From positions 37,820,001 to 37,884,000 of the forward strand of contig CM060733.1 of NCBI GenBank assembly GCA_030704615.1: 64,000 bases of DNA. Direction: 5' to 3'. The notes under the pieces are model-generated. The model did no database searches, was not told the origin of the DNA, and worked only from the letters and a program-made list of their open reading frames with translations. A program made the position numbers and the translations under genes. This document shows, one piece after another, positions 26,105 to 63,480 of this stretch (its first letter is position 1; each line of letters starts with the position of its first letter). The DNA comes from Takakia lepidozioides (taxonomy: Eukaryota; Plantae; Bryophyta).

Positions 26105-28433
26105 GTCTAGTCGTCGGTAAAAGTAATGAAGTATCTTTTTCCTCCTTTTGATGGAACTGGCAGTGGTCCACATAGATCAGAGTGAATGAGTTGTAAGATT
26201 CCAGTGGCTCTAGAGTTGCTGGATTTAGGAACTCTCTCAGGACTTTGTTTGCCAAGTTGGCACCCTTCACAGGCAGTTTCCAAAATGGGCAGGTATGGAA
26301 GTCCAGTGGCCAACTGGTTGGAAGTCAAGTGATGAACTCCTCGGTGGTTCAGGTGACCCAATCGCTTATGCCAGAGTTTTGTAAAATTTATGGAGAGAGA
26401 GAGTGACTTGTAATTGATAATGAAGAAGATGTTACAATAGTGAGCGTGTGCTCACTTTAAGACATATGAACAGTTATGACTATTGATACAACCAATAGGT
26501 CTAACTCACACAGATCACAACTCTTTGTCTAACAGTTGTGTCCCTTCAAGATTCATCATATGACTTGATGAATGTTAGAATTGACTTCCAACACCCTCCC
26601 TCAATGAAAACATTCAAGAGTATAAATTCTGAAGGTCCTGTTTTTGTCCAACAATGCTATTAAAGCATATTCACATAATTTTAATCTTTGATTAAATAAG
26701 ATCTATAGAGTTGTCGGCGTTGGCCAACGTCCTCTCACATGTGCTCCCTTTCCCGTGGTTGAACTGAGACTTCGTTTACATCAAAGTGGAAGTCGTAATT
26801 GTGACCAGCTTGCTATCAATTAGTCAGAGATAGCTTGATTTTCAAATAGAAGTTCTCGTTGGAGAAATTGCTCATTTGAAGTTCAAATAATGCACCAATA
26901 GTGATGCTTTTGGGATGACACCTTAGATCTCTTCTTTAAGTTAATGCTGCATGACATAACTCTATGAAGGTTCTTAAACAAGTTTGTTGGAACTCCAAGC
27001 ATCATTAACAATCTAAATTGTTACATACTTGAATAACATTTTAAAATGTTTGAAATGGCCATTAGACTCAATTGTCTCCATGACTTCTCTGCAATTTTTT
27101 CACCATGAATATTCCATCGTTGGCTTCTTTGCCTAGGAATAATTTGTTCACCATACTTAGGTGCTTATGGTAACTATATTGATGCAAAGATCAACATTAA
27201 CATACTGAACATATCAATATTAACATGTTTTAGATCATGAAGATAGCTCTTCTTTGATAGTTGTTTGACTATCATATCTACTAGCATTACAATACTAGCA
27301 TGACAATCTTAAGTCGACTCTCATTAGATCTCTATGGATCGGTTGAGCACTAGCTCTGATACCATGTAAAATTTATGGAGAGAGAGAGTGACTTGTAATT
27401 GATAATGAAGAAGATGTTACAATAGTGAGCATGTGCTCACTTTAAGACATGAACAGTTGTGACTATTGATATAGCCAATAGGTCTAACTCACACAGATCA
27501 CAGCTCTTTGTCTAACAGTTGTGTCCCTTCAAGATTCATCATATGACTTGATGAATGTTAGAATTGACTTCCAACAAGTTTGACTATATCAGATATTTCG
27601 CCAAGAAGAATGTCATCAGATGATTCGAGAGATAGCACTTCATGACCTTTAGCTATTGTATCTGGCCTGTACAATCCATTGTAACAAGCGTAGAAGTAGC
27701 CATGATGATGCAATCACTACAGTCACTTGTCTAGGAGAGCTCTAGGATGGAAGAATAAGTAGGTAGGATCAGAAGGAGAAAGAATAATACAAAAAACAAG
27801 ATGATAGTAGCAAGGTGAAAGAACAAGATAATGATGGTCAGATTTTTGTCACCACATGCGTACGGTGCAGGAAAGTCGAAGTACATGCTATATTAATCTC
27901 TATATTAATCTCGAAACGAAAGATCTATAGATCTTCAGTCTGGTCGTAGGACATTCTTTAACTTTCTTTCTTTCACGGAAGGAGAAGCGCTCACTTAGTC
28001 ACTAATCTCTCTTGTGGAGGAGCGCTCACACACTCACCAAGGAACTAACCTGGGTGTTACCTAACAATGCTCTGATACCATGTTGAAACACTCATATGTT
28101 CATATTCAACTACAGAGAACACCGAAGGTGAGGGTACATATATAGTGTTTGCCACATAGATAGATAGAGAGAAAGAGATAGAGCAGGACCACATGGTCAC
28201 CACATGGGCATTATTGCTAACTATAATGGAGCTGCAATTCCTAAGGCATATGGTAGCCAGCCACTATCTAGAATCTTGGAGCAGTGCATTCACTTATGCC
28301 TGATCTATCGGCATACTACATGGGTGTGTTAATTCCAATACCTAAGTGATCTAAATAGCTTCATAGTATAGTGTATGTCCTCCAGTATCCACTAGGTCTA
28401 CGATCATGAGCCTGGGTGTGGACTGCCTCAATA
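26105..28433 (-). mobile_element. 5' half of a Ty1/Copia LTR retrotransposon (5' LTR 28081-28433, PBS-Met, gag largely deleted, GAG-pre-integrase and start of integrase)
   Basis: PBS TGGTATCAGAGC (reverse complement at 28069-28080). After removing the nested element the frame reads NGLY..KLWHKRLGHLN..CEGCQLGKQ..LQLIHSDLCGP..GGKRYFITFTDD. Confidence 0.9.
26380..27576 (-). mobile_element. Complete short non-autonomous LTR element (TRIM-like) nested in the Copia
   Basis: LTRs 26380-26593 and 27365-27576 (TG..CA, near-identical), PBS-Met next to 27365, PPT next to 26593, exact 5-bp TSD agttt, ~770-bp non-coding interior. Confidence 0.92.
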
Positions 28434-29253
28434 CTCTTGTGACTGGGAGGATACTATCTCTCTACTATCTTTCTGTAGGTAGGAAGCTTGCAGAAACGTT
28501 GGGCTCTCGTTTGAACCTGGCATGTAAAGAGACAGCCATATGGATGACAATGCAACCTGGAATTCTCTCTTATATCGGCATCACACTACAAATGTCTTGA
28601 TCACTGTCTTACAGTGCATGGTATTCCAACACTTCAAATTTTCGAGAGAATATATATACACACAGAGCATGGTGCCGAGCCTTGCATGCGTCATGGTGGA
28701 GTTTCTTGTTTTCTGTATTTCTACTTTTCTTTCTCAACGCGTTGACTGTTGGGACGCTGAATTCCTGCCTCTTGGATTCTCCTGAAGCTCCTTGAACAAC
28801 ACCAAATACTTGGTTAGAGGCATTTTGGTCCAGGCTGACATTCCAATGGCCATAGGGAGGATTTTTTCTCCTTCCAATCCTCCGAGTTGCTGGTGGTGGA
28901 ATGATCAGCAAACAGACGCGGGACACTTCCCGATTTTGAGATTTGGCGAGGTAGAAGAAAGGTGGGCAGTTTGTCAGCGAGATTGTGATTAGGCTAATGG
29001 GAAGTTTAGCAAAGAAAAACTCGATCAGCCTAATCCCATCCCTAATTATTCTCGCTGGAAGTGCCTAGGAATTCTCGGCCAGAAGGATTTTGTGATGTGA
29101 AATACTACCGTCGAAGATTTCATCTACGCTTTCATCCAGGTGAAGGTGAGGGAGAAAAAAGAGCTAGGGCTAGGGCGAAGAGAGCGAGAGTGTGAGAGCA
29201 AGGTGTGAGAGATCTGAGAGTGAGAGTTGAGACGGAAGAGGGATTGTTCGGAG

Positions 29254-29839
29254 ATGGCCCATCCCAAGAGCTTGCCTGCGGATGTCGTCGTGGCTGCCGC
29301 GAGATCGAAGCCCAAACTTATTAACGAAATTTTTTATGGCATTAGCCTTGGCGTTTTCAGTGCGTTCTCTTTTTCCCCATCTGTGTCTGGTTCCCAATGT
29401 CTTTCAATGATGTTTGGATTGTTTCCCTCCCCTCCTTCTGTCTCTGTCTCTGTCTCTGTCTCCGCAATTGGAGTGAGCCCCTCACAAAGATAGTGTCTGT
29501 TCCCTCTCGTTCCTGGCGCGGGGTCTATGGCCACAAGGCCACGGAAAACGAATTCTTATGAGTACATTCTCTCTCTCTCTCGCTCTCTCCACTGCTCTGG
29601 TTTGCCTACATCCTTTTTTCCCAAGTGGGTCTGTATCATTTGAGCATCGAAGGCTGAGAAATGGGGCCACGCTAGTTGATATTGGTCCTGCTGCAGATTG
29701 CGAAATGATAAAATGTTTTGGGATTGCTGGTGCAGCGGGCTCGTTCTGGAAGATGTATCACATGAATGCGCGGCGCAAAACTAAGGAGTTCTATGCAAAA
29801 TTGGAGGCAGGCGAAATCTCTGTTTTGGCTGATGAATGA
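29254..29839 (+). CDS. COX5C: Cytochrome c oxidase subunit 5C (plant COX5c/COX6C-like); exons 29254-29359 and 29736-29839, 69 aa
   Basis: LINEIFYGISLGVF|TGSFWKMYHMNARRKTKEFYAKLEAGEISVLADE matches the plant COX5C pattern. Phase-1 GT..AG intron. Confidence 0.88.
29477..29566 (+). mobile_element. Tail-only (~90 bp) copy related to the RTE-X-like LINE, in the COX5C intron
   Basis: gcgcggggtctatggccacaaggccacggaaaacgaattcttatgagtaca followed by (CT)n. Confidence 0.75.
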
Positions 29840-29967
29840 AGCATGGCTAGGGGTAAGCTTGACCCAGGGTTGTGAGGGAGGGAGAGATTAGCTAGCTTAG
29901 GGCTGACGCTCTTATCAATCTGCACACTTAATTTCATACAGATGACTCCTAAAGTTTCCAAATTGAG

Positions 29968-30135
29968 TACTGCACACTGTCCACATACTTGGGGGTGGGG
30001 TTGGAACCCCTGGTGAGGGATCCTAATTGTCCGCAGGTGAATCACACTTGCAGAATGTGCTTTAGCTGCAGGCTTCCATCCCCCCATTATTTCTCTCTCT
30101 TCCCCCTTCTAGACAATGTCTACTGGCAGTGTCAC
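29968..30135 (+). repeat. Dispersed ~170-bp repeat (SINE-like?), copy 1
   Basis: Matches the reverse complement of 58667-58822 (ccctggtgaggga...tagctgcaggcttccatccccc...tctagaca.tgtctactggcagtgtc). Confidence 0.75.
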
Positions 30136-32039
30136 ATTTTTTATTGAATTGGGGACTTAAGAAGCATTGGTGGAGTGAACAATTTGGTTTCTAGCAAGAC
30201 TTGTAGACCAGCCTCTACTTAAACGCTTTCCTCCCTGCAACCACATTGGCACTGACTATGTGATCACACAGTTGGGCTGAGTTTCCATACCCGGTAGGTA
30301 GAAATCCACCCTGACTCGAGAGTTCATATTCCACTGGCACGGTCCCTCCAGGATGGGTAATAGCCAGTGTTTGCAGTGTACACTCAATTAATATATTCTA
30401 TTCCCTCTCGGCTCTACCATCGTTCTTCAGTGTACATTCGCAAGCAAAGGCTGTGGATAACAACTTTCGGGATGCTTGCTTCCAGTGTTGCTTGGAGTGA
30501 CCAGGTACAAGTCTATGGCAAACCCAACTCATGTAATCACATAAATCCATTCCGCCTCTTCTCTGTCATCTGATCACAGCCAGACCTACTGCCTTTGACA
30601 AGCCAAATTTCTTAACTTCATAATCTTAATTTGTTGCAGGCATACGGTGGTTTCCAAAGACGGGCTCTGTAGCCGCCAGTACTGGTATGCCACTTGCTCA
30701 GACCAACCCATTGCTCTCATGCATTCTTTTATTGCAAAGGAGTGTGTCCTGTTTTCGATTCCTGGGGGCATGACCAAGAGAAGAGAAGGTTATTGGCGAA
30801 TCAGTCAGATTGTGAACCTGCTTGCCCTCAAATATGAAAGAAATTCGCATAATTCTCTTTTGATGGTCTATTTCACCTGTATGCGTTCTATTCGCTACAC
30901 ATATTATGTATTGAGGTAAATTCCCACAATTAAGCAAGCCTGTAGTGACCCCATTCCAACTCCTCCTCCAAAACCACTTTTCTGGTCAGTCCAAATCATC
31001 TCTGTTACAAGGCTACGCCAACCTAAGACTGATGGTGCACCCACATCCCTGTAATATTGAAATGTTTTATACCACTGTGGTATTTACATCATATCTTCAC
31101 TCACAGTGGCACTTCCCGTTTGAGAGGAACTATCATTTGTGCAGTGTTGCATCCTGCAGGGACAATGGGTGCAAGGTTAGCATCTTTGTAGTGACAGTAT
31201 GTACACATGTTTTTATTCACAAACACAGAGGTCGTGCAGTAATGACTCAAGTTTTTTGATCGACATAGTGTTGGAGACAGCTATGTGACCATCTCCCTCC
31301 CAGTCACATGCTCCTTGCTTCTGGGTTCTGGCAGCGTGTCAACTGAATGGCCTCAAGTTCTGACAGAAGACTCTGGTGTGTGTGGCAGCCTTGTGGAATG
31401 CAGTGACATATGCAACTTACTTGGTGATGGTGATGACAGACCTTGAATTTGCAGTGCAGTTGCCTGCTGATGCCTGATAGATGTTTTCGTTCTTTGTCGT
31501 ACTTTCCAGTAGAGGGAATGATGTCTAGGTTCAAGCCTTTTTATTAGCCTTTGTGGTCTTTTTTTTTGCGTTAATTCCCTCTCCGAGCTGAATTGGTCGC
31601 TCCTTAAGCAAGGTGCATGAAGCCTCTTTTATCTGTGGTGTCTTGAAACATCAGGGGATACTTCCAACCCTGGAGTGGCACTGTTTGTTGTCCTGTCATG
31701 AATGTTTGACACATGTTCAGGGAATGAATGAGCAAATACCCGTGTTTGGGACCATGGATGTCTTAGACAGACACAACACCTGCTGCGTCCACTTCACAGC
31801 TTAAGCATGGGAGCAAATTAAAATGTGATATAACTTTCTAGTGTTAACGGAATATGGCACTTGGTTGTTAATATCAGAAAAAATTCTTCCACTGTTGGGT
31901 GCCAATGCATGAGACAACAACATGAACTAAAACCCACCCCTGAAAAAGACAATGTTTGAAAGCTGAAGTGTCTCTTAGTTATGAAGGCTGTAGCTGGAGT
32001 CTTCCCCCTCCCTAAGTCATGAATGATATCCACAGGTTA

Positions 32040-32794: not shown

Positions 32795-33569
32795 TTAACC
32801 CCTAAACGCCTACAGCTTTTTTTTTTAAATTGAAAAATCTGAACCTCATGCCACCATTTTATTTATAACTAAGCATTTGCTCAGATCTAAAAAAGTTCGC
32901 CATACAATCATGATGTAAACTACATCCCTACCTTTCCCCAGCGTTTCGGCCGCAGAAATTGTAATCTTATATGTGTTTTGTGAGCATGAAAAGTTTCTGT
33001 AACCTCTGCAGAGTACAAAACAATTATACAAATATTATCAAAATTCCTAAATGGCTGGTCCAATTGAGTTAAGATTTTACATGGACATGTCTCATGATGT
33101 TGGCACCTTCTCCTAAAGTTTCAGAGTTTTTGTACAAGATCGGTTATACCTGCTTTGTAATGATTGTCTACAAAGTGCATTTTCTTCATGTTGCCACCTT
33201 TTTTATTTTGGGGAAAACATGGGTGTGTTTTTTGGAAAACGGAATGGTCCCAACGTCCTAAATCAAGTTGGGAAGGCACTCCTGAATTTTTTATTCAATC
33301 CATCTTGAAAATCCCCTCAGATTTGGATTTCCTTTGCCAAGGCATGTAATTCTGCACTGCCCCGTGTTTCTCAGGGCGTGCCCCATGGGAATCTGGGGTC
33401 ACCCTCCAGAGCAAGCCTTGTCAAGCGGTGGTTAAGCCCCCTTCGCAACCTGCATTCATTCACAGAAGCAGTACTAGATACTATAGCAAGTCATGAAATG
33501 TATTCATTCATAACATCTGGCTACTTTGTATGCATGTAGAATGAGGTGGTGGTCGAATGACACAATGGT

Positions 33570-40100: not shown

Positions 40101-43100
40101 CAGGAGACATGGGAAACTTCGGACAAACTGGTTGGAGATGTCATTGGTTATAAATGGATCGGTAAGATGTGCGCTCTTAGGGCAGCCTCTGGCAAAAGTG
40201 GTAAAAAAGGGGTTGGCTTCTTTCTCCGTGATTTCTTGTGTGTCAATTGTGAAATTATCAACAAGGGTTTGCGGTTTGAGCACAGTAATTGGCTAACACT
40301 GAAATTGAAGGGCAGCGTGAATACGAAGGACCTCTTTGTGGGTAGTGTTTACATGCCCACAGAGGGGACCTTGGTGCTGACACAGACAAAGCCTTCGAAG
40401 ACGTAAAGTTGGACTTGTTAAGTTCCTCGCCAAAGGTCAGGTGGTCTTATTGGGTGACTTCAATGCCTGGGTGGGCCAAGGTCTTCATCAGGATGATACC
40501 ATTGGGCCTTTTGGTGAGGACGAGCTGAATTCTAATGGTAGACGGTTAATAAACTGTCTGAAAGAACTTCAGCTTTTGACCTTGAATAGTAGGTCAAAAG
40601 GAGACCAAGTGCAGTGGACTCGTGAGAAAGCCCAAACTGGGGAACGTTCCATTGTGGATTATATCATAATGGACAAAAATTTGTTTCCCAAGAGTGCCAG
40701 TCTGTTGATGGACAGAACTGATATTGGTACCTCTGACCACTTCCTGGTTTGGACTGAGATCAAAAGGTGTTTTCCCAACACCAAGAGATCTGTGAAACGT
40801 TCGAATCGGAAGTGGCGCATAGCAAAATTCCAAAGTGAAGAGGTCAAGGCTGAGTATGTCCAGGCCTTGCAAGAGGCTCTCCCTCATTTTGTCCACTCGC
40901 TCCAAGACCTTCAGTCTCGCTCTGGCAATGCAAGAAATGAAGTCGAAAGAGCAGTGGATTCTTGGGAAAGTTTTGTCTCCTCTGTGGCTGACAAGATCAT
41001 TGAAAGGAAACTAATTGTCTGCGGTAGAGCTGTTAATTGGTGGACCAATGAGATTAAACTCAAGATAGCTGAGAGACGAGTCCTCTATAAAGAGTGCTGC
41101 AACTTGAATACCACAAAGATATCAATCAGCTTGTAAGGTCTCAGAAGAAATTATACTGGGACAAGCTGTGCAGTGAAATAAACTCAAACCACCATGGTGG
41201 TAATGACAAGAGATTCTGGTTGGCCCTTCAACGTTTGTACAAGCCGAAAAACTGCCAGCAAGTACAAGCGCTGAGGACTACTAAGGGTGCAGTGATGACT
41301 TCAACGGTTGACATTGTCAAAACCCACTACAGTATCCTTGGCAGATTTCTAGGTCTAACAGTGAGGGTCCTCTGAAGAATGGAAGGGCACAGTTGGAAAA
41401 ACTGTTCCTACGATTCAAGGCAGCAAAAATTTGGAGTATTTCAAAGGCTTACAACGCTCCCATTAGTTCTTCTAAGATTGTGGAAGCATTTGAGCATTTA
41501 AACAGATATAAAGCTGGTGGACCTGATGGCATACTCAATGAGCTTATCAAGCACGGTGGCGATCCCATGATAGAGGCCTTGTACTTCTCTTTAACTTATC
41601 TGGAGGACTGAAATGATCCCCTTTCACTGGCGACAGGGGGTCATTCTCAATCTATACAAGAAGGGTGACAGAGAAGAACCGGGGAACTACCGAGGCATCA
41701 CGCTCCTGAATGCAGTTGGCAAGATATTTTGCGGAGTTATAAGTACTCGTCTCGAGGTTGATCTGGAATCTAGAGGTTGTTTCCGCGAAGGCCAAGCTGG
41801 CTTTCGGCAAAACAGGGGCTGTGTGGATCAGATCTTCACTCTAAGCCAGATTATCCAGGGAAGGAAAAAGAAGGGAAACCCACTTTTGTATTTTTCTTGG
41901 ATGTCAAAAAGGCTTATGACAGTGTCAAGAGACAGTCTATGCCTCCGATTCTGGTCATCGGGGATCAAGGGAAAGATGTGGAGAGTTGTCCAGAACTTGT
42001 ATGCTCACACCAGAAGTTGTGTCACTATTATTGGACTGAAGTCTAATTTCTTTGACATAGTGTAGCTCAAGGATGTACCCTCTCCCCTCTGCTCTTCAGT
42101 GTTTTCACCAATCAACTCCTCGAGGATGTGGAAAGTGAGGGATTTGGGTTAAGGGTGGTTGATGCCACCATACCAGCCCTTATGTTTGCGGATGACTTTG
42201 CATGCATAGGGGAGACTCCATCCAATCTCCAGGAGTTGGTTGATCGCGCAAAGAGATACCTTTGGGGACTAGAGGCTAATGTCAGTAAATGCGCAGAGGT
42301 GGCACTCAACGACCAAGGGGAAGGAGGAGGCGATGGCAGTGGGGAAGCCAAGACATTCCGGTCCTCCCTTCCTACACATACCTTGGCGTTAAGTTCTCCT
42401 CCAACTGTAATTGGGATGCACATATTCAAAAAGTTGTTCTATCTGGCAAGCGCAAAGCGTTGGGGGTGCTTAAGGAGTGCATATCGGCATGCTCCAAAAC
42501 AGCCAATGTGGCTGTTCGGGGTGAGTTTGGCATCCCTCCTTTAAGCTCCCAACAAGATGAATTCAAGGTCAGATGGTGGGGAGGTAGAGATTGTACTCAT
42601 AAGACGTTGTTTGCCGTAGCCTTGTGGCCATTGACCCCACGCCCAGTTTGAGCGGGAACAAAAGGGACAGAACCTACCTCTGTCAGGGGCTGACATTGGT
42701 AGTAAGACTTACCTCCATATAAAGAATTAATCCGGGTTTTCCAGATATCCTCTAGAAATCCCTTCACACAAGCATCAATCTGCTGTGTGTGATTTGCCCA
42801 AAAACTAGGCCTCAGGAGGGCCTGGGCTTTTGGCTCAGCCTCGAGACTTTCAAAGTTGGTAAACAGGGGTACAGGCACAATTCCCTTAATAGATTTGAAG
42901 AGAGCGTCTCTTTGGTGAGAGAACCCCGGACAGTGTATCAGAAAATGAATACTGTCTTCAGATTGCCCACACAACGGGCAATTGCACTCTCCCTTTCCTC
43001 TCTGCTTCTGTTTGCTGTTCAAAGGTAGGCTTCCTGCCCCGAGTTTAAATTTCAGTCTAGTGCCGAGAGAGTGGGGAGGTAGAGAGTAGAAGAGATTCAC

Positions 43101-45444
43101 AAGGATCTGAATCTAAGTCTGCAATCCTGGGTACTCTAGCCAGAGAGACGTCCTCTTGAAATCCATCAAGGGAATTGTGCCTGTATCTCTATTTACCAAC
43201 TTTGAAAGTCTCAAGGCTGAGCCAAAAGCCCAGGCCCTTTTGGGGCCTAGTTATTGGGCAAACCACACACAGCAGATTGATGTGTAAAGGGATTTCTAGA
43301 GGATATCTGGAAAACTCGGATCAATTGTCTGTCCCAAGGTAAGTCATACTACCAGTGTCAGCCCTTGAAAAAGTAGGTTCTGTCCCTTTGTGTTCCGCTC
43401 AAACTGAGCGCGGGGGTCAATGGCCACAAGGCTACGGCAAACAAAGTCTTAAGAGTGCATTATTCCACATATTTACAACTGTCTGTCAATCTTCCTTTCT
43501 CTGTTGTTCTATTTGATTCCCTTGGGTCCTACCTGCATGACGTCTGTAACCTTTCAATGTGGTTTTCTTGTTGTTCTAATTCGTCCCCAGGACATTATAA
43601 GTATCGTCTTTCAATCTCCACTCTCCCTCTCTCAATAGTGAAATTTGGGGATAAGTATACTTCTGTAAAATGGCAGCATGCTCTGGCCGGCTTTGTCAGA
43701 GAACCAGATAACAATCAACATGTAGCCAGTTGTGGGGATTTTCAGGAGAGATGAGGATGAGGAGCAGGAGGGAGAACATATTGACAGTCAATAGCGCACC
43801 TGCTAGCAGGATCCTCTAATTGTTTCTTGCATTCCTCGGGAAGCCCAGCAATTCTGACAAACCACTGCTCAAAGTTAGCCGCACACCTCTAAATACCCAG
43901 CAGCTAACTCCTCAACTGACCTACACCAAATATCAGTCCAATTGCTAGATTGATGGAAAGTCTCCTTCATTTTCCACAGAAAGACCCACACATTATCACT
44001 TAGGAAGACTACAATAAACAAAGAAACGCCCTTTGACTGAATTTGCCAGTACAAGCTCAAAGGAAAGAATGTACTTATAAGACGTTGTGTGCCGTAGCCT
44101 TGTGGCCACTGGCCCCACGCCCAGTTTGAGCGGAACACAAAGGGACAGAAACTAGCTTTGTCAGGGGCTGACACCGGTAGTATGTCTTACCTTGAAACAT
44201 GCAATAGATCCGAGTTTTGCAGATATCCTCTAGAAAGCCCTTCACACAAACATCAATCTACTGTATGTGATTTGCCCGATAACGTGGTAATTTGATTTGT
44301 TCAAAGGAAAGAGAGAAAGGGGAAGTGAGGAAGACCAATACTGCTTGGTATTCTCACCTTGATGCAAGAGGCAAAAGCTTCTGGCGCAATTCCAGGTACT
44401 CAGGTACCTACTACCCCCAAAAAACATGCATCCAGCTTCCTGTCAGGAAATCCAACCCTGACATTAAAGTGTGGGTGTGCAGCTGCGGTGTGTAAATACT
44501 CTTAACTCAATGTCACTTTGCATGCTTTGGTATGTACCAACCCTGCTTCTTTCTTGGGAGATGTTTCGAAATCTGCGTCAGAGACAGTCCATATTGGATA
44601 AATGGGCTGGTGGGGGGAGAAGAGAGAGGCTAAGCCAGAATCCTAGACCCTCAACCCACTAATGCAGCCCAAACCGTCAGCAGATTCTACAGATTAAGCA
44701 GATTCTGTATAGTTTGGGCATGACAGGTGAGAGGTCTCAATATCCGCTTCAAAGTCTTAGGGTTAATCCATTCCTGAAGATGGGGTCAAAAGGCTGTAGG
44801 GAGGGGTTCGTCTCTGTGGCCGTTCATGGTCTCGTTCAAAATGGAAGGGTACCTGCAAGATCCTTGGCAACTGAGTGCATTTATTTTTATTGCACAGAGG
44901 ATAGCTTGTGTTGGAGGTGTTGGTAGAAGCTCTACCTCTGTATAGAAATTGTCTGTAGTTCTACCAGCAATCAAAGAGGAGCGGAGCTTAGAAATGTTCA
45001 TGAAGGTCACATCTTCTTGCCACCATGGCAGTGTGACTACCGGGATACTTCAGACACAAGTTTCTGAAATACGTGCCCAATTGAGCGCTGCTGTCTATGC
45101 GCCAGAACCTTTTCCGTAAGGATTTTTTTATGCTTATACTGTAAGTAAAATAAAAGAAGGAAGACTGGCCATACTCCTGAAATAGCGATAATGCCGAGTG
45201 AATCGGTACCAAATCCTGCCTCGAGCTCAGCTGACAAATCCCTGTTCTTATCCTGCACACAAACAATCCAACCAACAAGTCAGCCAACACACTACCTCTA
45301 CCGGAGCGTTGGCCTGCAAACACACGCGCTTCATTTCATGCGGGTACAAAGAACAATGCTAACAAACGTCAAATCATCAAATACCAAGATCTCAGGATAC
45401 GAGATGGTGATGACACGGCCTGTGGCGGATATTTGGTCGGCCAT
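34123..45444 (-). CDS. 2-oxoglutarate/Fe(II)-dependent oxygenase-like protein, about 15 exons, with a ~4.8-kb LINE-filled intron
   Basis: Exons MADQISATGRVITISYPEIL; DLSAELEAGFG..LGIIAISG; VPEYLELRQKLL; GLPEECKKQLEDP; YSFGWSHGKERLESG; KGSFYANP; YPSYC..LWP; AFKELG; CHKGRLLHYFP; WCGWHFDHGSLT; AGLYIRDR; IAYQMGE..ATLHCV; RSTFALFMQP; DEPL; NFGDFSEKRLSRYY. HxD..H facial triad present. Confidence 0.88.
39096..43459 (+). mobile_element. Near-full-length decayed non-LTR retrotransposon (APE endonuclease + RT; RTE-X-like), antisense within the oxygenase intron
   Basis: EN motifs GTFN, GQETW, GVGF, VYMP, LLGDFNA, IVDYII, SDH. RT motifs KAGGPDGI, GNYRGITLL, QAGFR, FLDVKKAYDSV, QGC.LSP.LF, FADD, YTYLGV. 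Family 3' tail at ~43360-43459. Many frameshifts. Clade assignment is inference. Confidence 0.9.
42591..43070 (-). mobile_element. Younger 5'-truncated copy of the same LINE inserted antisense into the long copy
   Basis: Exact 15-bp TSD gtggggaggtagaga at 42576-42590 and 43071-43085. Open CCHC-domain frame and complete tail. Confidence 0.92.
44069..44300 (-). mobile_element. Short 5'-truncated copy of the RTE-X-like LINE
   Basis: Family tail plus exact 12-bp TSD tcaaaggaaaga (44057-44068 / 44301-44312). Confidence 0.88.
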
Positions 45445-47690: not shown

Positions 47691-47895
47691 GAGATAGGTG
47701 CAGCAGGTGTCTTCTTCCCTGGGACGACGGGAGTTACAACTGGGCTGCGGGTGAGGGAGAGATGAGAGATTCTGGGTTGCACTGCGATTTGAAGCGGGTT
47801 GGGGGAGAGAGGAGGGAGATGAAACGGGGTGGGACAGTAGGAGGAGTGAGGGGAAAAGTGCAGTGGTGGAGGCGGGGGTTGCACTTTGCTAGCAT

Positions 47896-48378
47896 GTGCA
47901 GCAGCAGGGGTTGCAGGGGCATATGTTCTCGGACATAACCTTAAATTTTATGGGGAAGGACTATCCGCTCTATCGGATTATACTTTTGCAGTCTTCGTAC
48001 TTCCATTTACTTCTCTCAGGCCCCTGGACAGAGTACAGAAAGCTGCAAATCGAACTGCAGATTGATGACCCTTCTGTGAGCGCGGAGGGGCTGGAGATTG
48101 CCTTCTCCTACATGTATGGTATGAGCCCAGTTTTCACTGGAGATAATGTGATGGCAGCACTGGTCGCAGGGTGTTTTTGTTGGATGGAGTTCTGTGACAA
48201 GTGTGTGCAGTGCATTGTAGCCAACTTGAGGGTGGACACTGTTGTTGCTTACCAGCAGCTGTCCGAGCGGCATTGCAATGGCTGGTTTGCCGACCTGATA
48301 AGAAATGCTTGTTGGACATTTATTTGCCCACATGCATCGCGTGAGGTCGTTCATCTCCTTCCAAAGCTTTCTTTGCAG
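47896..48378 (+). pseudogene. BTB/POZ(-BACK) gene fragment, germ-cell-less-like
   Basis: FSDITLNFMGKDYPLYRIILLQSSYF..LLSGPW..LQIDDP.VS.EGLEIAFSYMYG. Upstream side abuts a LINE and no downstream exons were recognised. Confidence 0.65.
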
Positions 48379-50431
48379 GTGCTTCCCACCACTCCACTTC
48401 CCTCTTTACACCCCGCCATTCCACCTGATTTAGTAATCTCATCAGCCCCAAGTGTGGCATTCAATATGGTTGGGGCAATCTGTGGGTGTGCGTATGCATA
48501 GCCCTATCCAGGAAGGTCTTTCCATTGCAGTGAGGGTCAAGTAATTTAGGGGTTGTATGTGTTGCTCTTGCACATGACTCTGAGTCTGTCATTCAAAATT
48601 CTCGGGTGATGTTGAATCTGAGAAGGGAAGAGGTGAACAAGCCTGAGACTCATGACGTGTTCATCTGGAGAGGTATAATTCACACTGTGCCTTCTAAACT
48701 TGGCGAATATGAGGATTCGTTGGGTGCATATTGTCGGTTGGTCTTAATTACATCAATTGTGCCTGGAAGTGACATGGAATCTACTGGGGTTATGGAGGAG
48801 AATTCTAACGTGCTTGGGACTTGGATGGCACTTACTTCGGGAACCCATGTATGTCCAGATCTCACCCGGATAATCATCGCTACTGAAGTCTTGAGTGGAG
48901 AATCATTTTGTCTGAGCTATAGTGATGTGTGCAGATATGTGTCAGTACAGTATCTGCAAAATAAAAAATTCTTAGGTCATGGGATATGAAATCCCAGACG
49001 TAATTTCCATGTGGATGAAACAGTTATGTTCTGGAAATAGATTGTCAGGCAGCACTTTTAATGAGGGAATTGTATGATCATACTCTGAAGTGTGAGATAA
49101 GTCAAAAATTTCTGAGGTGATGATGATCTGAGACATCAAGAATTGTAGCTACAGCAACCAGTCAACGAATTTGCAGATTACTTCATTACCTACACAGGCA
49201 ATGGTTTGTCTCTCCCTCTTAGTCATCATGGGTGCCACCTGTGAGAGAGATGATTAGTCACAACCCTTGTTACTTCCAGCTAGTGAAGCTGGTTTGGCAC
49301 CTTACTAGGTGGACAACGCGTACAGAGACCACATGATAAAAGGTTCATTGGCAGGGTTTTATCGGTTGGGGGTTGGATTTACCAGACAGACAGGTAGGTA
49401 CTAAGAGGGACTGAATAATGCTGTTGTGTGGCTGATCTAGCTCGTTTGGGGAAATAGTCCTTGTGTAGGTGTTATGCAGGCTGTTGAAATCAGATGAACT
49501 GTGGGTTCTCAGTGAATCAGAGTGCAGACTGGAAGTTGGCACGTGTGAAACCCACTGATTTTGTTTCGAAGGCTATGGCAGCAGTGGTTTAATGAACGTC
49601 ATACTCTGCACGATCGATGCTCTCTAGTATGAATAATACTCCTTTCCCTTCGAACCTGCTTGCTGGCTGTGGTATATCAGTGGGCTCAACCCCCCCAACC
49701 AGGTGTGTCATATCAAACGTTCGCAGGAACGATGGAGATACACAAGGTCATAGCAAGGAGATGTGAAAACAGGACATCGACATTGGGGTTGAATAAATGA
49801 ACAGAAGAAAAGACAGGCAGTGAACAAGTGACACACACAAACGCTGCTGAATAGATGAAGATCAGGGATTGTGAAAGTACATAAAGATCAGGGAGCTGCA
49901 ATTAGCACTCGAGAAACTCAACTACCAACACCTAATCACCATTGAAGCAACGAAGCAACCTATATCCAGACAAAGCAAACGACACTGGTAACGGTAAGAG
50001 TAGAGAGACAATGGCATACGATTGACCAGCCAAAACCAAAGAGAGAGAACGCTGACAGGGGCCTATGAATGGCAGTATCGAATTTGACCTCGGCTTCAGA
50101 CTTGAGCTACCGAGTCTTCTTGTTCTGGAAATTTTCCTTTGCCATCCAGCATTCCTCATGATCCCTGCCAAGACAACACTGATGTCTCAGTTTGTTCTTC
50201 ACAACATGAGCCCGTGTTTTTGTGAAAAGAGAGACAAAGAAACAGTTCTCGAAACAGTCTTACAATGAAAACTTCTCGAGAACATGTTCCCATGAATGGA
50301 ACAGAGAAACGGAAAGGAGGAAAGGGAAGTGGCAAGAAAGGGTCAACAAACTTGTCTGTGTTCTCGAGAGCCTGCAATCGAAGGCGAGGAGGTCTTTGTT
50401 AGTGTGCTTGTTCTGAGCAAGGCAGCCGAAG

Positions 50432-55243: not shown

Positions 55244-58060
55244 TCACCAAAAATCCCCACAAGAACAGACCCCATCTTGGAAGTGATGGAAACGGTTGCC
55301 ATCCCGTACAACAAGTGCTCGCGCACCAATCTTCGATATGAACTTGGTGGCTGTGTGGCAGTCACCACACACCCTCAGGTTCTTGATGATATGGATGGGT
55401 GTCCCCTGGGGTGTGCTGATGATCCCAAAAGCAATAGCCAGCTTCTCACTGTGGTAGCAGAGAGAAAACTCCTTTTGCTCCTCCTCCACATCATGTAATA
55501 CAAAGCAAGTGTCAGGCACATACCCAGCCTCCCTCATCTGTCCAAACAATCTCTTCAGTTCAGCATGGATTTCCTCAATTTGGGGATGCATTTTGTCTTC
55601 TACAACAAATGTATGCACCTGATTGTTAATCTCAATACAGCTGCGCCCTGCCTCCTTTCTGACACCTCTTTCCTCCATCATTTTTCTCACCTTTGCTTTC
55701 TCGTCCCACCTGCCAGCAGCAGCATAGATATTTGATAGAAGCACATATGTTGCAGCATGATCAGGATTGCAGTTGAGAAGGTTTTTTGCAGCTCGCTCTG
55801 CTAGCTCCACATCTCCATAAATTCGGCAGGCGCCAAGCAAGGCCCCCCAGACTCCAGCATCTGCTTCGATTGGCATTTCCTTGATGAAATCCTCTGCCTC
55901 CTCCAATTTCCCTCCACGGCTAAGAAGGTCCACCATGCAGCCAAAATGCTCCACTCTAGCCATGAAGCTGTAATCTCGAGTCATGGAAGCAAAGTAGTGA
56001 TGGCCTTCGTCCACTAGGCCCAGATGGCTACATGCAGAGAGAAGACATAGAAAGGTGATACTGTCTGGATTCAAGCTTTCCTGTTGCATTTGTTCAAATA
56101 GTCGCAGGGCCTCCCTGCCATGTCCATGCTGGGCATACCCTGCCATCATCATATTCCATGACACCACATTTCGTTCGGCCATACTGTCAAACACTTGACG
56201 GGCATCATTAATGCTCCCACATTTGGCATACATGTCAGCAAGGGCAGTCTCCAGAATGATATCTGCCGAGATTCCAGCTTTGCTGATGTCAGCATGGACC
56301 TCTTTGCCCTTTTCCAGGGCTGCCAGGCTAGAACAGGCATTGAGAACGCAAATGAATGTCACCTTGTCAGGCGTCACCCCTTCCGTTATCATTCGTTCAT
56401 ACATCTCCAAGGCCTTCCTACCACAACCATGCTGAGCATATCCTGAGATCATCACACTCCATGAAACTACATCTCGTTTATGCATGTTGTCAAAAACCTG
56501 GTGGGCATCATTTAAGCTCCCGCATTTAGCATACATGTCAGCAAGGGCGGTCTCCATAATGATATCAAACCCCATTCCAGCCTTGACAATGTCAGCATGG
56601 ACCTCTTTGCCCTTCTCCAGGACTCCTAGGCTGGCACATGCATTGAGTACACAACTGAATGTGAAAGTGTTGGGGGTCACCCCTTCCTGTATCATATGGT
56701 CGTAAAGTTCGAATGCCTCCTGACCACAGCCATGCTCGGTGTACCCTGCAATCATCACGCTCCATGAGACAACATCACGTTTTGCCATATTGTCGAACAC
56801 TTGACGTGCATCCTTCATGCTCCCACATTTGGCATACATGTCAGCAAGGGCAGTATCCAAGTTCACATGTGACGGAATTCCAGCTTCGATGATGTCAGCA
56901 TGCACCTGTTCGCCCTTTTCCAGAGCTCCTAGGCTGGCACATGCATTAAGAACACAAGTGAATGTGACCCTGTCAGGCAATACCCCTTCCTGTATCATTT
57001 GCTCATACATCTTGAAAGCCTCCTCACCACACCCTTGCTGAGCATATCCTGCAATCATCGAGCTCCATGAGACCACATTTCGTTTAAGCATATTGTTGAA
57101 CACCTTACACGCATCATTCACGCTCCCACATTTGGCATACATGTCGACAAGGGTGTTCTCCAAGTTAATATATGATGGAATTCCAGCTTTCATCATATCA
57201 GCATGGACCTCTTTGCCCTTTTCTAGGGCTCCTATCCTGGCACATGCATTTAGAACGCAAATGAATGTGACCCTGTTGGGGATGACCCCTTCAAGTTGCA
57301 TTTCCTTATACAGCTCCAAAGCGTTCACACCGTAATCATGTTGAGTATATCCTCCAATCATGGCATTCCATGAGACCACATTTCGTTTTGTCATTGCATT
57401 GAACACTTGCCGCGCATCCTTCATGCTCCCACATTTGGCATACATGTCAGTAAGGGCAGTCTCCAAATTAATATATGATGGGATTCCCGCTGTGATAATG
57501 GCAGCATGAACCTCTTTGCCCTTTTCCAGGGCTCTTAGGGTGGCACAGGCATTGAGAATGCAAATGAAGGTGACCCTGTCGGGTGTCACCCCCTCCCGTT
57601 GCATTTGCTCATAGATTTTAAAAGCCTCCTTAGCACACCTATGCTTGGCATATCCCGCTATCATGATAGTCCACGTGAATACCGTTCTTTCAGGCATTTT
57701 GTCAAACACTTGGCGTGCCTCCACCAGACTCCCACATTTGGCATACATGTTCACAAGGGTGTTGAGCAATAAGGTGTTCGGTTTAAATCCACTTTGGATG
57801 ATGTGCGCATGCACCTGCTTTCCCTCTGCTAGGTCTTTCAAGTTGATGCACTCCTGCAAGACAGTAACATAAGCATTGGAGTCTGCCTGAAGGCCTTGTT
57901 GGTTCAAAATGCAAAGTGCCTCTTTCAATGCTCCTGCCTTAGATGGGGTCCTCCAATCCCCACACATGACAGGAGAGATCTTGTTTAGGCCCTCTCTTGA
58001 CCCTCTTTCAAAACTGGTGGCGATTGGTGCTACCCCTGCTGCCAGTTTGATGGCCAACAA
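55244..58060 (-). CDS. PLS-class PPR-E1-E2-DYW organellar C-to-U RNA editing factor (20 PPR motifs); true start unresolved
   Basis: Uninterrupted ORF L-S-(P-L-S)5-P2-L2-S2-E1-E2-DYW with HSEKLA, CGDCH and CSCGDFW terminus. In-frame stop at ~58112 and an AG acceptor near 58090 suggest either an upstream exon or use of an internal ATG. Confidence 0.95.
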   Translation of the reverse strand: MLAIKLAAGVAPIATSFERGSREGLNKISPVMCGDWRTPSKAGALKEALCILNQQGLQADSNAYVTVLQECINLKDLAEGKQVHAHIIQSGFKPNTLLLNTLVNMYAKCGSLVEARQVFDKMPERTVFTWTIMIAGYAKHRCAKEAFKIYEQMQREGVTPDRVTFICILNACATLRALEKGKEVHAAIITAGIPSYINLETALTDMYAKCGSMKDARQVFNAMTKRNVVSWNAMIGGYTQHDYGVNALELYKEMQLEGVIPNRVTFICVLNACARIGALEKGKEVHADMMKAGIPSYINLENTLVDMYAKCGSVNDACKVFNNMLKRNVVSWSSMIAGYAQQGCGEEAFKMYEQMIQEGVLPDRVTFTCVLNACASLGALEKGEQVHADIIEAGIPSHVNLDTALADMYAKCGSMKDARQVFDNMAKRDVVSWSVMIAGYTEHGCGQEAFELYDHMIQEGVTPNTFTFSCVLNACASLGVLEKGKEVHADIVKAGMGFDIIMETALADMYAKCGSLNDAHQVFDNMHKRDVVSWSVMISGYAQHGCGRKALEMYERMITEGVTPDKVTFICVLNACSSLAALEKGKEVHADISKAGISADIILETALADMYAKCGSINDARQVFDSMAERNVVSWNMMMAGYAQHGHGREALRLFEQMQQESLNPDSITFLCLLSACSHLGLVDEGHHYFASMTRDYSFMARVEHFGCMVDLLSRGGKLEEAEDFIKEMPIEADAGVWGALLGACRIYGDVELAERAAKNLLNCNPDHAATYVLLSNIYAAAGRWDEKAKVRKMMEERGVRKEAGRSCIEINNQVHTFVVEDKMHPQIEEIHAELKRLFGQMREAGYVPDTCFVLHDVEEEQKEFSLCYHSEKLAIAFGIISTPQGTPIHIIKNLRVCGDCHTATKFISKIGARALVVRDGNRFHHFQDGVCSCGDFW

Positions 58061-58666
58061 AGAACTGTGCCAAATTGAAGCCTGCCGTCCTGCATGACTG
58101 AAAGCACTTACTTACCATAGGTTTAAGCTATCATGTTCCTCAAAAGCTCCTAGATGCTTCAAAGAAAGCTCTCGTTGTGAGAACAGGCTCCTTGCTACAT
58201 ATTAACAGGGTTACATAACTACTGCAGTCATCTACTTTGAGTGCGAACTGTACCAAATTTATCTGTGTGAGTTGAAACCCTTGACTCAGCGCCACTGTAG
58301 TGTTGGCCTGGAGCTCCATGCTGTACGTGGACATTGGAGCCATCAGCAGGTTGTACTCCATCTTGTACCATCACAGCTACCTCTGCTTTCACCCAAGGAA
58401 TTTCCGATAAAACGCTCAATCCAAACGGCTTCCTTTGTGCGCTTACGTCTGAAGAATGATGATCGTGGACCTTTCTATGAAAACCACTAGTGGGCACCTG
58501 AACGCCCATAGCTTTGACAAAAGCCCCACAAGCACTACAACCTGCAAGCTCTGGGTAGATATGTTGGTAGTGAGGAATATGTAATTTACAAGCAATAAAT
58601 ACAGGTCATGCCCCCAGGAGTAGAAAACAGGACACAATTCTTTTTGCAATAACCGAATGCGATTGC

Positions 58667-58822
58667 GACACTGCCAGTAGACACTGTCTAGAAGGGGGAA
58701 GAGAGAGCAATTATGGGGGGATGGAAGCCTGCAGCTAAGACACATTTTGTAAGAGTGATTCGATTCACCTGTGGACATTCAGTTCCCTCACCAGGGGCTC
58801 CAGCTCCAACAAAATGTGGACA
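58667..58822 (-). repeat. Dispersed ~170-bp repeat (SINE-like?), copy 2
   Basis: Reverse-complement match to 29968-30135. Confidence 0.75.
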
Positions 58823-58904
58823 CACAAATGCAGGTACAAGGCTCAGCCTTGGGAGAATTGGGCCTTTGTATCCTTCGTACTTTCTCCTCACCTCCTTGAG
58901 AACC

Positions 58905-59568
58905 AAAAGAGATATAAGACAGGATCTGTCAAATTTCCAAGATTCGGGGCGATGGACCCTCTCAGTTTGAAGTTAGAGAGCTTCATGTGACACCATGTCC
59001 AAAGCACAACTGCAAATGAAACTAAGATACATATATACAAACACTTCAGAAATCCACAGCAGATACCCAACAGAGCCTTTTCTTCAATATACCTGTGTCA
59101 CTCTTCTGCTCTGTCCTAACTGGAGACAGAGTGTACGATGACTGAGACCAGCACTCCTTTCAGTGCATTTACAAAATACCAATGTGAAAAGCCCCGGCAC
59201 TTACAAAGAAACGACATCAACGTGTTGCACACCCACTGTGCACTCAATTCCTGTCCATCCAGAGAAACAAGGATCGCCCACCCAGTTTTCTAGCGGCTGC
59301 GGGTCACCCACAGCCTTCTTGAAAGCCAGCAACGCCCCAGCTGATAGCATCATCAGACATTGACAAACAATTAGGGTCTAATAAGTTGTGTAGATTTGCC
59401 TTGAATTTCTAAAGATTGTTCAAAGCTGGGTGGTGACGCATAAGATAAAACATTCTGGTGCGACCTGGGCGCTAACCACAAGAGGCATGGCCAATCAAGT
59501 TCTGATCTCCAACTAATACGTACGCAATTATCTGAATCAATTGGTTGCTTGTCTTTCTCTGTGTCCAT
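58905..59568 (-). pseudogene. LRR receptor-like protein/kinase N-terminal remnant (LRRNT + first LRR)
   Basis: ALLAFKKAVGDPQPLENWVGDPCFSGWTGIEC and KLSNFKLRGSIAPNLGNLT. The acceptor before the LRR exon reads CAT rather than CAG, and the gene is truncated afterwards. Confidence 0.75.
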
Positions 59569-60559
59569 GACTTGATTTCTTCAATGCTCTGCCTTGTTAG
59601 ACCTCTTTGTGCCCTACTTGAGAACACATTCTGAGCATGTCAACTTGCAATCTGGGAGGACAAGGTGGTGATCACGACTTCAACTTTTCTACAGATGCAT
59701 GTACCCATTAGACCATGTCCCCTAGGATTCATGACAGGATTTACCAACGAAATCATTGTAGATTACTGTTAGAAACGACCCCAACATTTCTCTTTTGTTC
59801 TCCTTGTGAACTTGAGAGGTGATGGAAGGCTGTCTCTAAAAGTGGCCCCAGTAAGGATTTTTCCTATGCCACGAAGCTTGGGCAAGTGCTGATCGAACTA
59901 CAAAGCAGAAACGGAAATGCAACCTCTTCCATAAAAGCTGACTTGCATGACCGCAACAGTCTCAGACAGTCTTCCCTTCAGTCATGCGTGTTGAAGGGAG
60001 GCTTCGTCGGTAGTAATGAGTGGGGAGAGAGTGAGGGAGAGAGTGAGAAGTGCCCAGCGGCACCTCATGAAGCTCATTTTAAAACTCTTCTACTCAGAAC
60101 GAAGTGAGATTCGGCATATCGACAAATCGTTATTTGTTATTTCTTTTGATTTCTTCCTCGATCCTTTCTTCTGGGTTTTCTTCTCGTTTTGATGCATCTG
60201 GATGAGTGGACCATATGACTGTGTTATATCAATTCTCAATTTTCAAAGGGTTAAGAAGGTGAGGAAAAACTTAAAGCATGACTCGGCTGTGAGGCACAAC
60301 GTCATGGCATTGTGCCAAGCCCAGCCCACAAACATGAAGGTGTCTCAGATGATGATGATAGCCAACCTTTCATAAGCATTATCAAGCTGAAAGCACTGAA
60401 AGCACATCCAACACTGTGCAGGTTCAAAAGCAACTGTTTGCAGGCACATTCCTCCCAAAGCCAAACGAGGCACACTCCAACACAATCCAACGGTTCACCA
60501 GGAAGCAAATGTACACGTAAATTTGAGAAACTTGAGAATTGGTAGGGAGGCCTGGAAGA

Positions 60560-61200
60560 TATATGAGCAAATTATACTCGGAAGAGGTAGCGAGTTGCCA
60601 ATGTGCACCATTCTTCGTGGGATTTACACGCCGTCTGACCCGAAGGTCCTATCATGTACACACAGTTTTGAGGCATTGCATCAAGGGGCAGTTGCGGTGG
60701 TCGATCATCCTATCCAGAATGAGAAGGGGAATGTGGTCGGAGATGCCTTCAGGCTCATCAATCCACAGACAATGATGCCGGGCACGGACAGCGCCAGACC
60801 ACCTCCAACCTGGGCCCACCTCCACAAGCCTTCTATTCGGGTACAGAACTGGAGCTGGCCGCTCTTCTGGTGTTTTTAGACCAGGGCCTTTGCTTCCTCC
60901 ATTCGTAAACTGTGAATAGTTGTCGCATTATACCTTGTGCGAAGACTGGGCCCATCTTCTCTTGGGCACTCCTTGAAGAGAACCATAATGGACACTAGGA
61001 CGTGTTTTCAGGAAATAATTCACAGAAAGATTTCTTGCAGGCATTGACACATGGATTGAATCGGCACTATTACCCTAGTGGAATCAATTATCGCAAGAAT
61101 GAGCTCGAAGAAAAGATGCTGCTAAATCTTCACAAAAGTGGACAGATGGGTTGGCCCTCTAGTGCTTTGACAACCATGGCAAAACCAACGAGTTATCCTA
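60560..61200 (+). pseudogene. RPN11: 26S proteasome subunit RPN11 pseudogene fragment
   Basis: SFEAL..AVAVV..PIQ..KG.VV.DAFRLINPQTMM, HLHKPSI|[29 protein letters not shown]. Frameshifts present and the JAMM motif is decayed. Confidence 0.85.
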
Positions 61201-62057
61201 GTTAGTGTACCGGCCGCTTGTTCACCAGAGGCACCAAAAGTACATTCTCTTCAAATCCAAGTTTCGCAGTGATACCGATTGTCTTTTGAAATATGCCTGC
61301 AGATCACTCATCTGAAGTGTGACGGCTATGTAATTGGGCATGTCTACCTCCATGGACTCGCAGACGGAATGATCCTGTGGCATTTTATCAAGGGCAGAGG
61401 TAGCCCGTGGGGAACGCATCTCTTTTCTTCCCAATTTCAGCTCGCGAGCGAATGTAATCAAACTCGCATCAGAGTCAGACAATTTGACAGATTGTCCAAC
61501 AGAGATTTCCCTTTCAAAGATTGTCATGAAGAATGTCATTCAAGATTTTACAATGCAGAGAGGTTCTGGGGGTAAAATGGTGTCCATTATCATTTCCCGG
61601 AGTATTCCATCTTCCTTTACTGCGCCTCATCGTCACTCCTATTTGGTGCTCTAAGAACTAGTTTTAGAAACCTCCAAATAAACCAACACTCCCTATTTTC
61701 TATTTGGATCCAAACTCTGAGCTACAGATTGATGGTTGCTACTCTTACCATCTTCAGCAGTCTTTGTGATGTTAGTGGGCAAGCTCTATCCAGATGGATT
61801 GGATAATGATGGTATCATCCCTATCCTTGCTTCTGGGCACAAGACTGACCAGAATGCTAGGCTCCTTCACAAGACCAAGCTGCTTCAGCTTTGAGCTGAT
61901 ACCTACCCTGAAGGAATGATCGCGGCTAGGAGTCTGTTCTAGGGATTGTCTATAGAAAGCCCCTGCATATTCTGTACAACTCCAGGGTGTATGCTCATCC
62001 GCCTGGGGCAAATTAAAAAACAAGACAAACCCTACTGGTTTATTTGATGGTATCCTT

Positions 62058-63278
62058 ATAAAGGGAACCATGGATTTTGGATTGATGTTTTATGCGGAAG
62101 GAGGAACGGGTTTGGACGGGTTTGTGGACGCAGATTGGGCACCTGGCGATCAAGAAACAAGACGATCTACCTCTGGATTTGTGTTCCGACTTGGGGGATC
62201 ACCTGTAACATGGTCGAGCAAGAGACAGCCATCAGTATCCTTGTCGTCAACCGAGGCGGAGTATCGAGCCATAACTGAAGGTACCAAAGAATCGATGTGG
62301 TTGCAGACTCTTACTCAGGAACTTGGCTTCCTCATTGGTAAGGCAATTCAACTTTGGTGTGATAATTCAAGTGCTATCAAAATGGAGAACAATCCATTGT
62401 TTCACACGCGTACTAAGCACATAGAGGTGCATTACCACTTCATTAGAGAGAAAATACTAAAAGGAGAAGTAGACTTAGACCATGTTGCATCAGAGAGTCA
62501 ACTTGCTGACATATTCACAAAACCATTTGGGAAACAGAAGTTTGTCCATTTCAGAGATGCCCTAGGATTAGTCAGCCTACAGCAAGTAATCAACCAACAA
62601 AAGACTTGCTCTACTCGTGAATGCTAACTAGTAGATCTTCTTGTTTGGATCATAAATAGGATAGGGTAAAGTATAACCAGTAGAACAGTATGCTCCTGTA
62701 GGATAGTCCATAGAACTCTCAATCCCAGATTCATACCACTATAGACAAGTCTTCAGCAATCTGGCAAAGGGGGTCAACTTTTGGTCTTTCACTCAAGGAC
62801 AAAGCCGACTTTTCTCTCAATATTTGTGGACCAGAGCGAGCGGTCTTTCCTACACAGGCCATAATCTGCGAGATGCTCGAGATAACCACGAAAGAGAAGT
62901 GTTCTGGGTGTGAGAGAGGGTGTTGAGGCAGTCCACCCACACCCAGGCTCATGATCGTAGACCTAGTGGATACTGGAGGACATACACTATTACTATGAAG
63001 CTATTTAGATCACTTAGGTATTGGAATTAACACACCCATGTAGTATACCGATAGATCAGGCATAAGTGAATGCACTGCTCCAAGATTCTAGATAGTGGCT
63101 GGCTACCATATGCCTTAGTAATTGCAGCTCCATTATAGCTAGCGATAAGGCCCATGTGGTGACCATGTGGTCATGCTCTATCTCTTTCTCTCTATCTATC
63201 TATGTGACAAACACTATATATGTACCCTCACCTCCGGTGTAAAAAGTAGTTGAATATGAACAGCTGAGTGTTTCAACA
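62058..63278 (+). mobile_element. 3' half of the same Copia element (end of RT, RNase H, PPT, 3' LTR 62921-63278)
   Basis: IKGTMDFGL..GFVDADWA..RRSTSG..WSSKRQ..SSTEAEY..CDNSSAI..TKHIEVHYHFIRE..QLADIFTK. PPT gagagaggg. TG..CA LTR roughly 95% identical by eye to the reverse complement of 28081-28433. Confidence 0.93.
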
Positions 63279-63480
63279 AAGAGGACACGATAATTACATC
63301 AAGAAACCTCCAAGAAACATTCACAAGATCAAGAACTTGTCTCGGCCAGCAGACAGTAGGATGAGAATCGCATAGGAGAAACGGAGCAAGATGGACACAG
63401 AGTAAACCAGAAGGGACGACGAGGTTTACATGTTAATGCAAGAAATGAGAGAGAGAGAAAGAGAGAGAGAGAGAACTCAC

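Follow-up and report, generated by a model that had tools for sequence, protein, structure and literature searches.

In plant genomics, an LTR (long terminal repeat) retrotransposon that has been split while its halves keep a matching target-site duplication (TSD) is a marker of rearrangement, and reading it so is standard comparative logic. Inversions with flanking deletions, termed delINV, INVdel and delINVdel, have been described as classes of complex structural variants in human data (Collins et al., 2017, PMC5338099). Here we describe a locus in the bryophyte Takakia lepidozioides where a single Ty1/copia element, inserted with the TSD AAGAG, was probably later split by an inversion of ~36 kb, with loss of the N-terminus of a polyphenol oxidase (PPO) gene and of the integrase-reverse transcriptase (RT) region of the element at the left junction. 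The window, meaning the whole 64,000-nucleotide stretch that was analysed (contig CM060733.1 of assembly GCA_030704615.1, positions 37,820,001 to 37,884,000), is numbered from its first letter throughout. An earlier examination of the letters alone, here called the sequence-only reading, had already proposed a Copia element split by a ~36-kb inversion; this is still the best reading, although the second break, inside the PPO gene, had gone unseen, and with it an additional loss of at least ~3.4 kb.

Both ends of the element are preserved, in opposite orientation. The 5′ LTR (28081-28433, minus strand, 353 bp) and the 3′ LTR (62921-63278, plus strand, 358 bp) were delimited by pairwise alignment and by self-blastn of the window, which returned one inverted repeat pair for this sequence (28081-28437 versus 63278-62917) and no further copies of it in the window. 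Over 353 aligned bases the pair is 95.5% identical, close to the ~95% formerly estimated by eye, with a Kimura two-parameter (K2P) distance of 0.047. The differences comprise 16 mismatches (6 transitions and 10 transversions), five of which fall in a single TCTCT/AAAAA block, together with a 4-bp and a 1-bp indel. The ends are TG...CA in the 3′ LTR and TA...CA in the 5′ LTR, where the initial TA rather than TG amounts to one substitution. The primer binding site TGGTATCAGAGC (28069-28080, minus strand) adjoins the 5′ LTR and is called tRNA-Met-type here, since we take it to be complementary to tRNA-Met, and the polypurine tract gagagaggg (62912-62920, plus strand) directly precedes the 3′ LTR; both were read directly from the sequence. 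Outside the LTRs lie the two copies of the TSD, ctctt at 28434-28438 (minus strand, AAGAG in element sense) and aagag at 63279-63283 (plus strand), and the equality of these flanks noted in the sequence-only reading is confirmed. Within the window a random pair of 5-mers matches with a probability of 1/825, and AAGAG itself occurs at a frequency of ~1/540. Further copies of the family could be followed in short-read contigs from four runs of one sample, possibly the assembly's own source, which were compared with the window at 59000-64000 only and at a likeness of at least 95%. The one other copy with a visible flank in these contigs is bordered by GTTTG and not AAGAG, so that a preference of the family for AAGAG as a target is not strongly evident. 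Paired LTRs, a primer binding site and polypurine tract in place, a 5-bp TSD, and integrase upstream of RNase H assign the element to Ty1/copia.

The 5′ half carries a pre-integrase domain and the start of integrase (26110-26379, minus strand; Pfam gag_pre-integrs, E 5e-12), reading LWHKRLGHLN...HSDLCGP...YFITFTDD. Next to the primer binding site, six-frame translation leaves a remnant of the 5′ internal region (27577-28068, minus strand), which consists of the leader and ~45 codons from just upstream of the pre-integrase domain. Between these two parts, and thus inside Copia just upstream of the pre-integrase domain, sits a complete nested element resembling a terminal-repeat retrotransposon in miniature (TRIM), which occupies 1,197 bp on the minus strand (26380-27576) and was defined by self-blastn, its LTR ends and its flanks. 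Its LTRs (26380-26593, 214 bp, and 27365-27576, 212 bp; minus strand) have TG...CA ends and are 97.6% identical, a tRNA-Met-type primer binding site TGGTATCAGAGC was read from the sequence at 27353-27364 (minus strand), and the TSD AGTTT flanks the element at 26375-26379 and 27577-27581. The short LTRs, the primer binding site, the size of ~1 kb and the 5-bp TSD are those of a TRIM, with an interior judged noncoding from sequence only. Only 492 bp separate the Copia primer binding site from this nested element, and no gag-like open reading frame (ORF) is present among the six-frame pieces of the 5′ half; gag and most of protease are missing, and deletions have evidently struck the element elsewhere too. 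The 5′ half had formerly been described as an LTR, a primer binding site, a pre-integrase domain and the start of integrase at 26105-28433 on the minus strand. These parts stand, while Copia homology ends at 26110 rather than 26105, and the description is corrected by the nested TRIM-like element and by the lack of a recognisable gag and protease in this half.

On the other side, the 3′ half holds a frame for the end of RT and RNase H that was translated to its stop codon (62059-62627, plus strand; ORF 62070-62627). In this frame the RNase H motifs are canonical for Ty1/copia, and the Atlas clusters closest to it are of the Gag-pol and RVT_2-bearing kinds. Coding sequence ends with RNase H, no integrase follows ahead of the polypurine tract, and RT itself is missing. 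What is lacking between the two halves runs from FTDD of integrase to RYLKGT of the linker between RT and RNase H, a stretch which in Ty1/copia elements is ~2 kb long. Translations and Pfam bear out the former description of the halves as complementary, non-overlapping and abruptly ended. The 3′ half had been placed at 62058-63278 on the plus strand, and its RT-end/RNase H, polypurine tract and 3′ LTR are all there, with Copia homology beginning at 62059 instead of 62058. The same reading held most of the integrase-RT region to be lost, and this region is indeed nowhere in the window by Pfam and by a search for its continuation.

The two abrupt ends define two junctions. At the left junction, J1 (26109/26110), the 5′ half breaks off within integrase and abuts unrelated noncoding DNA: ...YFITFTDD ends at 26110, a stop comes next, and beyond it there is no Copia similarity. 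No Pfam match was obtained in 25911-26108, and the noncoding DNA left of 26110 extends towards a Nod19-like gene, the nearest gene, which ends near 23011. At the right junction, J2 (62058-62060), a PPO fragment is joined to the border of Copia RT and RNase H, and in all four runs contigs have loose ends there, at 62059 for those lying before it and at 62060 for those behind. The dinucleotide 'ta' at 62059-62060 is common to both parental sequences, and this 2-bp microhomology is typical of end-joining. Where contigs stem from other Copia copies, the sequence leading up to 62059 is ...GAGGCAGTCAAAAGGATATTCCGCTACC (EAVKRIFRYL-KGT), with ...CGCTACC|TAAAGGG at the border, and this fixes the start of Copia homology at 62059. 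Contigs of other PPO-side copies continue past 62060 with CCTTCAATGGCC..., which in frame on the minus strand gives YQEEVLAIEG. Both partners at J2 are shortened relative to their other genomic copies, and a search of the window for the 30-nt continuations seen in those PPO and Copia copies, with up to 3 mismatches allowed, found none. No sequence of 10 bp or more is common to J1 and J2 within 400 bp, nor are there inverted or direct microduplications at either junction; the 5′ LTR lies ~2 kb from J1 and the 3′ LTR 0.9 kb from J2. A degenerate tandem repeat array (24500-25143, units of ~170 bp, 75-88% identical) is found ~1 kb left of J1.

The PPO fragment comprises the C-terminal 94 codons of the gene (61775-62056, minus strand; stop at 61772-61774), cut at J2, and matches the Pfam family PPO1_KFDV at profile positions 40-130 of 130 (E 9.3e-11). 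Full-length PPO homologues taken from a library search match only 61781-62059 of the window by tblastn. The N-terminal part, ~460 codons, is absent from the DNA left of 26110, its expected place after a clean inversion, and from elsewhere in the window by tblastn and Pfam; across the remainder of the window, 293 stop-to-stop pieces searched against Pfam gave no tyrosinase, PPO1_DWL, RVT_2 or rve domain. As a separate observation, the PPO 3′ end with ~100 bp past the stop (61672-62060) stands at ~8-20 times single-copy depth at a likeness of at least 95%, the source being either a PPO family that has expanded very recently or a multi-copy element with a PPO fragment in it. The fragment is adjoined by a piece of a BAHD acyltransferase gene (61273-61572, plus strand) covering the region of the HxxxD motif (Pfam Transferase, E 9e-4); there is no room beside the PPO fragment for the rest of the BAHD gene, and the neighbourhood of J2 is a mosaic of gene fragments.

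Read depth gives an estimate of how common the partners are. Single-copy depth at 59000-64000 is ~25, 55, 45 and 60 in the four runs, and it rises four- to twenty-fold from ~61672 to 63341, which means that both sides of J2 are repeated in the genome. For the Copia part the summed depth is ~4-8 times single-copy in the four runs at a likeness of at least 95%, a rough figure, and the family looks low-copy. At 62893 the window has A, as does run X3, while the contigs of runs X1, X2 and X4 have G at full depth, a discrepancy due either to an error in the consensus or to variation in the sample. Further to the left, at 60425-60770, two contig variants occur, each at single-copy depth and differing by a single-nucleotide polymorphism at 60459 and small indels at 60455-60465, which suggests that this stretch occurs twice in the haploid genome.

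The following course of events would account for the locus. A Ty1/copia element would have inserted ~1.2 kb upstream of a COX5C-like exon, duplicating AAGAG, and later the segment now at 26110-62058 would have been inverted when two breaks, one where RT meets RNase H in Copia and one near codon 460 of the neighbouring PPO gene, were repaired by end-joining. Copia homology breaks off abruptly at two points only, and these delimit the interval inverted on this account, 35,949 bp. J2 (62058|62059) would be the untouched inversion junction, whereas after the flip the N-terminal part of PPO and the integrase-RT part of Copia would have come to lie side by side at J1, where both were then lost. The loss may have belonged to the same event, as an inversion with flanking deletions, or may have followed as one later deletion of at least ~3.4 kb across J1; a single deletion can remove both pieces because the flip makes them neighbours there. 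On this account the order before the event would have been, from the left, histone, epimerase, F-box and Nod19, a complete plus-strand PPO, the BAHD piece, PPR, ATP-f, BTB, minus-strand COX5C, an AAGAG site with or without the element, and the DNA that now starts at 63284. Observed directly are both halves with their like flanks, the truncation of Copia and of PPO, and the lack, in the window, of what is missing from each; we infer that the halves share an origin, how the locus was ordered before, and in which sequence the events came.

We favour a single inserted element because the same 5-mer flanks both LTRs, the LTRs are in opposite orientation, the halves are complementary and do not overlap, there are exactly two abrupt discontinuities, the number that one inversion needs, and the family is rare. 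With a handful of copies in a genome of ~325 Mb (5,084 windows of 64 kb), an unrelated second copy would be met within 37 kb about once per thousand. Jointly, these five points outweigh the look-elsewhere effect of scanning thousands of windows.

Several results weigh against this reading. The sequence-only reading had predicted that reverse-complementing the interval would restore one colinear Copia; when this was done for 26110-62058, neither a colinear Copia nor a colinear PPO gene resulted, and no ORF or repeat spans the outer break of the re-inverted sequence. As the PPO N-terminus and the Copia integrase-RT region are absent from the window, an extra loss has to be assumed. Two independently truncated copies would give like junctions, and the junctions by themselves cannot separate the readings. 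Among the contigs listed for the four runs, none demonstrably bridges J2; the copy number derived from summed contig depth is rough, and all four runs come from one sample that may be the assembly's source. Finally, in the 120 bp at the centre of the LTR, the 5′ LTR departs at 4 sites from 2-3 other copies that equal the 3′ LTR exactly. The sequence-only reading had proposed to abandon the single element if other LTRs were much closer to each of the two than these are to one another. The comparison is not decisive, as the 4:0 split is not significant and younger or consensus-like copies can mimic it. A clean two-break balanced inversion is out, since the flip-back leaves both junctions discontinuous.

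Among the alternatives, two independent insertions of the same family survive best, though we consider them unlikely. Here two Copia copies in opposite orientation would each have been truncated by deletion. The left one would have lost its 3′ part, and in the right one the deletion would have taken the 5′ part along with the PPO N-terminus; the AAGAG match would be a coincidence without any inversion. Both halves do end in unrelated DNA with their missing parts not nearby, as plain deletions would leave them, and deletions have evidently been frequent in this Copia element. It also suits two separate members that other LTR copies are identical to the 3′ LTR along a 120-bp piece in which the 5′ LTR has 4 differences, and among thousands of scanned windows a coincidence of about 1 in 800 can arise. 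Yet two insertions require the same 5-mer on both sides (~1/825 to 1/540), and beyond that an opposite orientation with non-overlapping, complementary halves, as well as two members of a family of ~4-8 times single-copy depth falling 36 kb apart in ~325 Mb; the GTTTG flank of the one other copy with a visible flank gives no evidence of a strong AAGAG preference.

A more complex history with at least three junctions has a smaller chance still of being correct. A short piece, the Copia 5′ half with some flank, might have been copied or moved in inverted orientation, or recombination between inverted copies might have been followed by deletions. Recombination of the latter sort would also place a 5′ LTR on the minus strand and a 3′ LTR on the plus strand, with a common TSD, and the PPO and BAHD fragments near J2 make this a mosaic region. 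Against this, neither a third discontinuity nor a trace of a second Copia turned up in the window by self-blastn and Pfam, and recombination between inverted copies would leave two full-length chimeras with a junction in homologous sequence, which are not seen. In its simple form, homologous recombination between two inverted Copia copies was rejected, there being no second element and no full-length chimera.

Least probable of all is an assembly artefact in which the 36-kb block is misoriented or mis-joined, for even though no independent contig or long read is shown to bridge either junction, the window is free of Ns, a block set in the wrong orientation should show reciprocal effects while the flip-back mends neither feature, the junctions do not lie within a repeat common to both sides, and contigs with the window's own letters stand at single-copy depth beside J2 (62107-62109).

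For the single split element, the LTR distance supplies a time frame. At assumed rates of 1.3e-8 to 5e-9 substitutions per site per year, a K2P distance of 0.047 corresponds to ~1.8-4.7 million years, which places the Copia insertion very roughly at 2-5 million years ago under commonly assumed plant rates. The inversion can be no older than this. If the event is real, it destroyed one member of a multi-copy PPO family, turned about eight genes round with respect to those beside them, and cut the COX5C-like gene off from its former upstream DNA; accessions or sister species could then be compared by means of a dated marker that is younger than the Copia insertion.

The gene content of the flipped block had been given as COX5C, an oxygenase, ATP-f and a PPR gene. 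The PPR gene and an ATP-synthase-f piece are confirmed, the COX5C-like exon (~29650-29840, plus strand, ~1.2 kb from the LTR) is recognised by motif only, and no oxygenase was found besides the PPO fragment. Pfam adds an LRRNT_2 piece and a Cu/Zn-SOD piece within 26110-62058, where the ATP-synthase-f piece also lies. The block further contains a long interspersed nuclear element (LINE) with endonuclease and RVT_1 domains (~39.5-43.1 kb, plus strand), a BTB gene (47893-48498, plus strand) and a PPR-DYW gene with an ORF of 938 codons (55244-58060, minus strand). Within the PPR-DYW ORF, 56025-57825 shows an internal tandem periodicity of ~303 bp with repeats 72-77% identical, and a homology search with the protein found no close relative, only proteins of at most 55% identity, the best of them around 50%. 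Exact-protein look-ups returned nothing on record for the PPR gene, two junction-spanning ORFs and the RNase H ORF.

LINE 3′ ends occur on both sides of J1, as an inverted pair at 23192-23673 and 42588-43069 (96.7% identical), one member outside the block and the other inside it, and further copies lie at 3858-4385, 43125-43459 and 44065-44283. The Nod19-like gene left of the block (21635-23011) matches its profile at positions 4-197 and then 344-375, with the middle, 198-343, not found, and may be a pseudogene or carry an internal deletion. Farther left, Pfam matches in 1-21000 comprise a core histone (E 7e-49), pieces of an NAD-dependent epimerase, and an F-box/Kelch gene with its F-box at 18510-18887.

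How this locus compares with the known systems can be summarised in three points. Like the products of ectopic recombination between inverted retrotransposons, it has a 5′ and a 3′ LTR with a common TSD in opposite orientation at the ends of the block; such recombination, however, needs a second copy and gives two complete chimeric elements, and neither is present here. With split LTR markers it shares the LTR pairing, the 5-bp TSD and the complementary halves that mark one former element, as well as a divergence that bounds the age, but where the usual case re-joins exactly, ~2 kb of pol is missing here and no base-by-base re-join can be made. The likeness to the delINVdel class would lie in an inverted segment, in junctions lacking formerly present sequence, and in a short microhomology (2 bp, at J2). 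In contrast to that class, for whose definition human population data supplied both alleles, the ancestral allele here is deduced from truncated features, and a deletion across one junction may have caused the loss separately, at a later time. It is tempting to see the 36-kb case as one instance of a genome-wide bias in break repair, in which inversions, often with loss at the junctions, would be unusually frequent in this bryophyte, though we hold this to be a doubtful extension. The rearrangement is of an ordinary, already known kind and holds nothing surprising for a plant genomicist; its value lies in the corrected anatomy of the locus, which also hints that the genome may commonly undergo rearrangements of this sort.

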